A DNA stretch of 64,000 nucleotides from Phallusia mammillata (GCA_965637545.1 OZ281497.1:14384001-14448000); one strand, 5' to 3'. Positions 26,101 to 29,100 are shown, counted from the stretch's first letter. Program-made: numbers and translations. The notes: generated by a model not told the origin, from the letters alone.

Positions 26101-29100
26101 ATCCAACGCCAGCCCGACCCAACACCGACAAACCCCTTGCTATTCAGCTGACTTGGACTGCTCTTCCACTGGAGAGAAGTAACGGTCCTATTACCGGTTA
26201 TGCAGTGTACTGGAGAGAGTCCATTATGGATGATGGATTCTACGACCGCCGCCAAGTGGTAGAACCGCTGATTCTCTTCCATCAAGTCGAGCCAGAGTCC
26301 CAGTAAAAACATTGTTGATTGTATTTCCGTAAAAAAGTAACTTTTTCAGCTAACAATTAAGTGTTTTTCTGTCGAGACTGTAAATTGATATTTCACAAGC
26401 ACTATATATATTACACGTATGTCGGTCTAAATCTTTCTGTTACTTTCAGATACGAGTTCCAGGTTTCGGCATTGAACGAAGCTGGTGAGGGCCCGAAAAG
26501 TCCTTCAGTGTTTGTTGAAGTTGAAAACATCGACATTCCTACCATGGAACGACCCAACATTACAGTGAAGGGATTTTCTGTTGTTGAAATTTCATCCGCT
26601 GCTGCTTGGCTAAAATGGACACCGGCAGACGATGAAGTTCTTGATCCACTTTATACGGTTTCTTTCCAGTAAGGGAGTTTCATGCTTTTGTTGTTAAACA
26701 GAATGATTCATATGACGTCACTTACCCTCGTCTGAATTGTGTTAAGTCAGTTTAATAAGCTTAACCAAAATGCACTAAATTTGGGAAAGTAAAATATAGT
26801 TTGTTTTTGGTTAGTCAGATTTGTTTCAATTGGATGGTTTGTTTTGCAGAACATCACAAGAAACTATGGTCCATCGTCAAGAAACATCATCCAACAAATT
26901 TGTTATTAATGGACTGACATCGGGAACGGCTTACAACTTTTCTGTAGAATTGTCTGGTGTTTATCAAGGTAAAAACTTCGCCCAGAAAAAAACACTCACT
27001 GTCGTCAAAAACTAACTTTTCTTAATTAATGTGCTCTTGATTTCAGGAATGAGGACCACACTAGGAACAACTTGGATTATGGAGCGGACTGCAGTTAAAC
27101 TGATTAAGTATTCGCCTGGTGTCAGAAACGAATACGATAATGGTGTGGTTGAGTTGGAGCTATTTGGTGTCGACAATGCATTCAACGTTCAAAAGTATGT
27201 TTTTTGCCTATTTATAGCTTTCGTCTGTTGCATCTCATGTTAAACATATCTTGATTTTGCCAGATATTCAATAGTAGTTGTGCCCGGCACTGCAGAAACT
27301 TATGGCGTGACGACCGATCAGTTTAGCTACGATCAACTTGTGGCGAACTCGAGAACGATGAGAAGACGCCGCAGAAGGAGAAGAAGGCGTCGACGCGAGG
27401 TCAGTAAGACGATAATAAATTGTACAAAGTGTTCTCAGCACTTTAACCTTTGTTTAAATCTGATTTTAAGATACAGATGATGCTTACAGTTTTTTGATTA
27501 TATGCAGTTTTTACGTACATACTGATTGGAACTATATTGAGTATATGTCTGTAGTAAATACTACTTGCTTAAAGGTGAGGTAAGACTATAAGGTTGCATT
27601 TCTGTGTAAGAGCCTGTTCCGTAAGTATATGGCTATTGGTCTCCCACGTCATTTCGAGAAATACTTGCGTTGAATATATTATTTACTTCATATTTTTGAT
27701 CAATTATATTCCTGTTTCAGACAAGCGACGTGCTTCCATTTATCGCTGCCGAATTTTCATCTATGCCGGAGAGAAAATCAATGAACATTAGCGACGGGAA
27801 AAACTATGGTGGATTCGTCAACAAGATTCTGGCTTCCGAATTCGAATATCGAGTTTTTGTTCGAGCCACCCTTAATCCTAGGGTAAGTTAATTTACTTCG
27901 CATGATAGGCGTATTATAGAATAGTTTAGGAGAAAAACGCGATAAATGCATTTTCATGGACATGTTGTGACGAACAGTCGCTGCAGCATTTGACTTTTTT
28001 GAAAAATTCACCAGGCAAAATTTCATCGCGAAACAGTTTTTATGTTGAAATCCTTCCTACACCCGCTATGTTATCAAAGTTTTACACGCGCCCATAAAAA
28101 ACGGAAAAAAAAACTCACGCAGACACGCGTTTTTGATCATGTGTGCAAGTTTTTAGTTTTGTACTCAGCTACTTTTAAATCTGTGTTGCCAAGTGAATCA
28201 AATACCAGTTTCTCTTTTTCAGGGACCTGCAGAGCTTAGCTTTACTTCGGGGCCATTCTCGCACGCGTTTCGGGTACCCGAACCCCCATCGAATATTCCA
28301 CAACCAACCGAAGCTGTTACAGGCGCCGGTTCCACTTGGATCGTCGGTCCGATCGCCGCTGGTGTTGTTCTTATTCTTCTTATTCTCATCATTGTGTGCG
28401 TTAAACGGTAAGCCCTTTTTTAGTTTTAGTTTCTTTTTGTATTCTAATTGTATTGTGCCTTTAACTTTGACGCTGCGTTGGACCTGTGATGGTTTAAGCC
28501 CCAAAAGGTGAGTAGCATGTCGAGCCTTCAGCGCCTTATCATCCAAATCCACATCTCATTTTGTGTTTAAATCAAATATGATTTTAAAGATGGCTGTTAT
28601 ATTTTGACTTTGCATTTTTCTTTTTGTGCATTTTTAGCAGGAAACGGATGAAGAGTGATAACGGGAAAGTCAAATACAGCGCACCGATTAGCAAACATAG
28701 ATCAACAACGAAACAGATCGAGCACGACCCAGTTGAATTGCGCAGACAGAACTGCCAAACACCAGGTTCGTGGCAAAACGCGCAAATCTCTCATGTTTTG
28801 TGACATTTGGATATTTTAATATTTCATTTATTTGTGCGCAGGTATGATGAGTCACCCACCAATACCCGTAAGCGAGTTTAAATCCCACACAGACAGACTG
28901 CGGGCAAATGACAACCTTAAATTTTCCCAAGAATACGAGGTAATTTACTCGGGCAAATTGATCTTGCGTTTACTCTGTATGAAATGTTATAATGTAGACT
29001 ACCAGGGTAAAAGAAGATTACATTTTTAACTGTTCTCATGTTTTCTTCACATTGCAGCACCTTTACTAACAATCTTCGCAGGCTTACCTTTTCCTTAGTG

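Follow-up and report, generated by a model that had tools for sequence, protein, structure and literature searches.

A candidate 9-nt cassette microexon just past the membrane span of a tunicate LAR-type receptor tyrosine phosphatase

At the presynapse, LAR-type phosphatases are central organisers whose extracellular mini-exons meA and meB set the choice of partner. The mini-exon meD, which was reportedly defined and named by Pulido et al. in 1995, lies inside the cell. In reviews it lies 'near the D1 catalytic domain' or 'immediately before the D1 domain'; they put the length of mini-exon peptides at up to 16 residues and list no known function for the intracellular inserts of LAR-type receptor protein tyrosine phosphatases (RPTPs) (PMC8711739, PMC12598525). 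Two juxtamembrane cassette exons are reported for rat LAR (PMC2120354). We analysed a stretch of 64,000 nucleotides (nt) from the tunicate Phallusia mammillata (GCA_965637545.1 OZ281497.1:14384001-14448000), here called the window, whose plus strand encodes a LAR-type (type IIa) RPTP with short introns. Judging by sequence and by comparison across species, a 9-nt segment in the intron that follows the transmembrane (TM) exon of this gene is probably an alternatively included cassette microexon.

A vertebrate family member, PTPRD, carries a cassette in the same place. Isoforms of mink (XP_044121616.1 and others) and hagfish (A0A8C4QU97) PTPRD read ..ILLYK-SKPD-RKR.. against ..ILLYKRKR.. in the forms that lack the insert. 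In Tetraodon PTPRD (L004), the TM-proximal intron holds a 12-nt segment at L004:5865-5876, flanked as ccAG/CAAACCTGACAG/GTAAAC (slashes mark splice boundaries), that reads S-K-P-D. The peptide is thus identical in mink, hagfish and pufferfish, the last read from the genome, whereas the tunicate peptides described below drift. Both intron positions and both phases match between the Tetraodon and Phallusia genes. The Tetraodon TM exon ends ..AAG AG in phase 2, and its juxtamembrane exon ends ..QTP plus G in phase 1, with the MASHPP.. exon next; the Phallusia (AAA CG) and Tetraodon (AAG AG) junctions are both in phase 2 and fall two to three residues past the hydrophobic span. None of the papers searched mentions SKPD or NKPD, and the nine annotated isoforms of a crinoid LAR show no insert at this site.

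The identity of the Phallusia gene is plain from its exons, which were searched singly. Pfam matches to Ig_3/I-set, fn3 and, twice, Y_phosphatase fall on separate single exons and give the type IIa domain set. Its D1 and D2 domains are 86% and 94% identical to those of Ciona savignyi LAR, and its nearest proteins are the LAR-type RPTPs of Ciona, Clavelina and Styela. The C. savignyi protein (P0136) was found by a database search with an FN3 exon of the window, whose other matches were mostly giant proteins with many FN3 repeats. The LAR proteins of Ciona intestinalis, Clavelina lepadiformis and Styela clava were found by region search from the C. savignyi protein, and their isoforms were taken from cluster members. 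The TM exon and the juxtamembrane open reading frame, each used as query in a word search, returned no match. Junction codons were read by eye or with short scripts.

An earlier note on this DNA had singled out the 230-nt intron after the TM exon for its branch-like TTCTAAT, TTTAAC and TTTGAC motifs, a TGC and the arrangement AAG/CCCCAAAAG/GTGAGT, and all of these are present where it had placed them (Table 1). Splice sites were scored with donor and acceptor position weight matrices (PWMs) built from 113 introns of three annotated tunicate LAR genes, for which the exact exon-intron structure was mapped. The candidate donor at 28508 stands at the 97th percentile of the 113 real tunicate LAR donors and scores higher than the donor of the TM exon itself. 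It is the sole GT with a donor score of at least 5 inside the intron, and one usable AG lies upstream of it. A second TGC is found at 28456-28458. The intron has no Rfam match and no unusual RNA fold (z-score −0.13), and an intronic RNA gene was set aside on these two results.

The key evidence comes from another tunicate. A Ciona intestinalis protein (P0274; UniParc UPI00089DC508, 1953 amino acids) equals XP_002120552.1 plus the residues SPG between ILYTR and RKNAKG, and this insert falls exactly at the junction of the Ciona TM exon and the next exon. The 519-nt intron at that junction holds a 9-nt exon in phase 2 at L003:18546-18554, flanked as aacAG/TCCTGGAAG/GTAAGT. It reads AG/T CCT GGA AG/G, or S-P-G-R, and is the sole scoring candidate in its intron. 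The proposal of the earlier note that the Phallusia segment is an in-frame juxtamembrane cassette microexon is backed independently by a three-residue isoform and its 9-nt genomic exon in a relative. The two share a gene family, the post-TM intron, phase 2, a length of 9 nt, a terminal AG and a TGC upstream, and in both a weak acceptor is paired with a very strong donor. They differ in peptide (SPG as opposed to RPK followed by S or R) and in the first residue, which is Ser in Ciona, where the TM exon ends in AG, and Arg in Phallusia, where it ends in CG.

Similar candidates occupy the orthologous introns of two further sea squirts. In Clavelina, a 281-nt intron contains 9 nt at L001:29370-29378, flanked as cAG/TCAGACGAG/GTGAGA, that would add S-Q-T. 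In Styela, a 1326-nt intron contains 12 nt at L002:47194-47205, flanked as tcAG/TAAAACACCAAG/GTAAAA, that would add S-K-T-P. All four tunicate candidates combine an acceptor at or below the 2nd percentile with a donor at the 54th to 100th percentile and end in AG, and all four have a TGC no more than 30 nt upstream, as against 31-33% of control AGs. The position is conserved among relatives: intron and phase are the same in Ciona, Clavelina, Styela and Tetraodon, and an AG at a spacing of 9-12 nt is kept in the four tunicates. These observations bear on a different role for the internal GTGAGT, that of a decoy or alternative donor that holds U1 and modulates removal of the intron. Its score of 11.5 against 9.6 for the TM exon's own donor would suit such a role, as would the outcome of read-through from 28407, which meets a TAA at 28409-28411 (CGG TAA) and would yield a tail-less, membrane-anchored ectodomain. 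A decoy, however, leaves unexplained both the conserved AG at 9-12 nt in four species and the in-frame protein isoforms of Ciona and vertebrates, and we regard it as very improbable.

The motif was also compared with chance. An AG followed after 3-27 nt, in steps of 3, by GTRAGT occurs 12 times on the plus strand and 6 times on the minus strand of the 64 kb, and about 2-4 such motifs are expected by chance across the whole gene. Because of this expectation the motif alone is unconvincing, and it is the cross-species match that makes the case. We also counted AGs paired with a good donor 3-27 nt away, in multiples of 3, that matched or exceeded the weakest of the four tunicate candidates. Their density is 0.11/kb over 91 kb of other LAR introns and 0.22/kb in antisense controls; for an enclosed length of 9 or 12 nt it is 0.03-0.04/kb. 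For a single 230-nt intron, the chance of such a motif is about 0.01-0.05. Per intron, it comes to 0.06-0.11 for Ciona, 0.03-0.06 for Clavelina and 0.14-0.25 for Styela. Combined with the window intron (0.025-0.05), and with the four introns taken as independent, these values give a rough joint chance of about 6e-6 to 8e-5.

Several points weigh against a spliced microexon. The score thresholds behind these background figures were set after the candidates had been seen, and the figures are rough. The candidate acceptor (−3.7) lies below all 113 constitutive acceptors and has a pyrimidine fraction of 0.5. The inserted peptide is not conserved (RPK or PKS, SPG, SQT, SKTP, SKPD). The Ciona support is one computed protein record that is missing from later RefSeq isoform sets, and the insert appears in none of the eight annotated Styela isoforms and none of the three from Clavelina. 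Flanking intron sequences of the tunicate candidates could not be aligned, as is expected at these distances.

The poor acceptor, the 2-4 motifs expected per gene and the unconserved peptide would all suit a chance pseudo-exon, in which an AG is followed by chance, 9 nt on, by a strong donor-like hexamer that the spliceosome ignores, the exon having been lost or never present in this lineage. This explanation has to contend with a single candidate sitting, in the same phase, in precisely that intron for which an exon of 9-12 nt is supported in Ciona and vertebrates, with a length identical to that in Ciona and Clavelina, and with the low chance per intron given above; the supported Ciona exon, moreover, has an acceptor that is itself weak, at the 2nd percentile. 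We consider a pseudo-exon unlikely and keep it in view mainly because of the very poor acceptor. The microexon is very probably real, because Ciona, two other sea squirts and vertebrates have an exon of 9-12 bases in the same intron.

What inclusion would add to the protein depends on the acceptor of the juxtamembrane exon, a NAGNAG that offers two starts, one Arg apart in the basic stretch. With the start at 28638, the junctions read CG/C CCC AAA AG/C AGG, or R-P-K-S-R, and the product would be VK-R-P-K-S-R-K-R. With the start at 28641, they read CG/C CCC AAA AG/G AAA, or R-P-K-R-K, and the product would be VK-R-P-K-R-K-R, without Ser. The spacing of 11 residues from the end of the TM span to the VKY motif, common to both Ciona species, Clavelina and Styela, is restored only by 28641, which is the favoured acceptor over the weaker TAG at 28638. 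The earlier note had given the insert as PKS and had it create a Ser in a basic context. Both statements hold for the TAG acceptor and for that acceptor only; with the favoured CAG the residues are R-P-K-R. The idea that the insert serves to supply a conserved Ser was accordingly rejected as a firm claim. A TM exon ending in AG, followed by a microexon that starts with T or C, makes Ser the first inserted residue in Ciona, Clavelina, Styela and vertebrates; the Phallusia TM exon ends in CG instead, and its insert starts with Arg. Of the five inserts, four contain Pro; Ser or Thr is common among the five, not universal. At the same junction, the C. savignyi Ensembl isoform H2YZU9 (P0153) lacks RKK (LYTR/SKSG as opposed to LYTRRKKSKSG), a 9-nt difference that could be an alternative acceptor or a model artefact.

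With the Tetraodon, mink and hagfish exon, the Phallusia candidate has intron position, phase and exon layout in common, as well as a TGC upstream and a short insert rich in Ser, Lys and Pro that splits a polybasic stretch. The vertebrate exon, by contrast, has 12 nt and reads S-K-P-D, where the Phallusia candidate has 9 nt and reads R-P-K, so that only the Ser/Lys/Pro composition is similar; its acceptor also has a strong pyrimidine tract.

Whether either exon should be called meD is a separate matter. The earlier note had put the candidate at the position of vertebrate meD, and this is borne out insofar as both are optional intracellular mini-exons between the membrane span and D1. It is doubtful in that the wording of the reviews points one junction downstream, whereas the SKPD exon shares the Phallusia intron. 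The Phallusia exon directly follows the membrane span, at the membrane end of the juxtamembrane segment, and one more exon and intron come before the HPPIP/D1 start. The long vertebrate insert lies, we presume, at this following junction (..QTP/..HPPIP). In the window, the intron there has 76 nt and no AG inside, and so could not accommodate a cassette 'immediately before D1'.

That the candidate is a true orthologue of the exon named meD by Pulido et al. is doubtful, if not without arguments. Descriptions of meD as an intracellular mini-exon between the membrane and D1 would fit, 'before D1' in a domain cartoon could cover this site, and the same intron of vertebrate PTPRD carries a cassette. 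The placement in the reviews, peptides of up to 16 amino acids where SKPD has 4, the two juxtamembrane cassettes reported for rat LAR, and the short AG-free intron at the next junction all speak against it. We therefore treat the Phallusia exon and the vertebrate SKPD exon as counterparts, for which meD may be the wrong label. Two Ciona features touch on the downstream junction. In C. intestinalis, the intron just before the HPPI exon contains a 27-nt in-frame candidate at L003:19021-19047 reading DCDKCEYQI, and in C. savignyi the Ensembl isoform H2YZV0 (P0152) has an insert of eight residues, CDCSQRQI, near the same point. They may reflect an exon specific to Ciona that sits where meD truly belongs, or an artefact of the gene models.

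Regulated microexons, often neural and of the SRRM4 type, are usually marked by a UGC upstream together with a weak 3' and a strong 5' site. The SRRM4/eMIC class (reported in Irimia 2014 and Torres-Mendez 2019) resembles the candidate in its range of 3-27 nt, its weak 3' and strong 5' sites and a UGC near the acceptor. In the window, the TGC lies at −25 from the acceptor (−3.7) and the donor scores 11.5, although the specificity of a UGC is low given its frequency at control AGs. The exon is the positional homologue of the 9-nt Ciona SPG exon and the 12-nt PTPRD SKPD exon. We propose that it is spliced in P. mammillata, and that its inclusion would be regulated, probably in neurons, because a very weak 3' site is here combined with a very strong 5' site and an upstream UGC. 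Inclusion would lengthen the polybasic stretch on the cytoplasmic side of the membrane by three residues (R-P-K, then R or S depending on the acceptor). Placed between the phosphatase domains and the membrane helix, this short insert with its Pro may serve as a spacer or kink, or else as a site of modification. Our best guess is that it would alter how the membrane helix is set relative to the D1 wedge, in register or in flexibility, or how the basic stretch contacts lipids or partners; a Ser/Thr site would come with it as well in most species.

A precedent for cryptic tunicate microexons is found in agrin. The Z6 and Z5 microexons of Ciona agrin are neuron-specific, depend on Nova and are followed by dense downstream YCAY clusters (PMC12445529). 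They resemble the LAR candidates as unannotated tunicate microexons at the site of vertebrate splicing in a synaptic gene, and differ from them in their dependence on Nova with dense YCAY, a motif that is inconsistent at the LAR site. Within +7 to +86 of the donor, the candidates have 3 (Phallusia), 0 (Ciona), 5 (Clavelina) and 2 (Styela) YCAY motifs, and 13% of control donors reach at least 3. The three motifs in Phallusia are a weak lead to Nova-type control, but with such uneven counts a Nova model finds no consistent support, and the signature was set aside.

Other features of these LAR genes and of the window were recorded alongside. At the meB site, C. intestinalis has a 9-nt exon, TTCGTCCAA, at L003:8677-8685, which encodes a VRP insert between Ig2 and Ig3 (egasiyvk-VRP-k) in three RefSeq isoforms; this meB-site counterpart is likewise preceded by a TGC and has the donor GTAAGT. 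In Clavelina LAR, an early intron holds a 15-nt candidate of in-frame length, AAAGGATCCAGTAAG, at L001:6961-6975 (acceptor 3.0, donor 10.8), which could be another unannotated microexon, in the Ig region. In the window, 27361-27396 encodes 12 Arg in a row where LAR-type phosphatases have their furin motif. That motif is a penta-arginine in vertebrates, according to a review of LAR-type phosphatases; the Phallusia run is much longer and, with the codons AGA, CGC, AGG, CGT and CGA, is not a simple repeat. Just past the 3' end of the LAR gene, an element of about 200 nt (32943-33143) recurs at 51412-51642 with 195 of 201 positions identical. Two near-identical genes resembling multi-pass membrane transporters lie about 11.9 kb apart at 44245-45533 and 56116-57371, and open reading frames resembling hAT/BED-type transposases (38467-40851) lie between LAR and these copies.

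Table 1. Features around the TM-proximal intron of the Phallusia LAR-type gene, in order along the window (slashes mark splice boundaries)
Feature	Position	Strand	Details
TM exon	28223..28407	+	ends ..IIVCVK + CG, phase 2; aligns with the Ciona savignyi LAR TM region
TM-exon donor	GTAAGC after 28407 (..GTT AAA CG/gtaagc)	+	PWM 9.6
Intron after TM exon	28408-28637, 230 nt, phase 2	+	read from sequence
AG-free zone 5' of candidate acceptor	28430..28496, 67 nt	+	AG positions listed
Branch-point-like motifs	TTCTAAT 28442-28448, TTTAAC 28460-28465, TTTGAC 28466-28471	+	putative, 26-51 nt upstream of acceptor
TGC	28474..28476	+	25 nt upstream of acceptor
Candidate acceptor AG (ttaAG)	28497..28498	+	PWM −3.7
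Candidate cassette exon CCCCAAAAG	28499..28507	+	9 nt, in frame, no stop; AAG/CCCCAAAAG/GTGAGT
Candidate donor GTGAGT, AAG before it	28508..28513	+	PWM 11.5
Three YCAY (TCAT, CCAC, TCAT)	28539..28559	+	31-52 nt downstream of candidate donor
Tandem TAG/CAG acceptor of juxtamembrane exon	28635..28640	+	PWM 2.3 (start 28638), 8.1 (start 28641)
Juxtamembrane exon	28641..28765	+	ends + G, phase 1; 57% identity to C. savignyi LAR over 42 residues
Intron at juxtamembrane/pre-D1 junction	28766..28841, 76 nt	+	no internal AG
Pre-D1 exon	28842..28939	+	sequence read

Taken across the family, we lean towards a second, unnamed intracellular LAR microexon, a 9-12-nt cassette in the post-TM phase-2 intron that predates the split of tunicates and vertebrates and has been kept for more than 500 million years. 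If so, what selection maintains in tunicates would be the existence of a short Pro/Ser/Lys insert at the membrane face, along with its length and its place, as a spacer, kink or phospho-switch, and not its sequence, and Phallusia would be one more lineage that retains an ancient cassette. We know of very few microexons common to vertebrates and invertebrates; this exon would add one and would correct the P. mammillata gene model. A cassette fixed at one junction from sea squirts to mammals would point to the first residues under the membrane as a regulated site of these phosphatases, and the Ciona or Phallusia larva would offer a simple animal in which to remove or force the insert.

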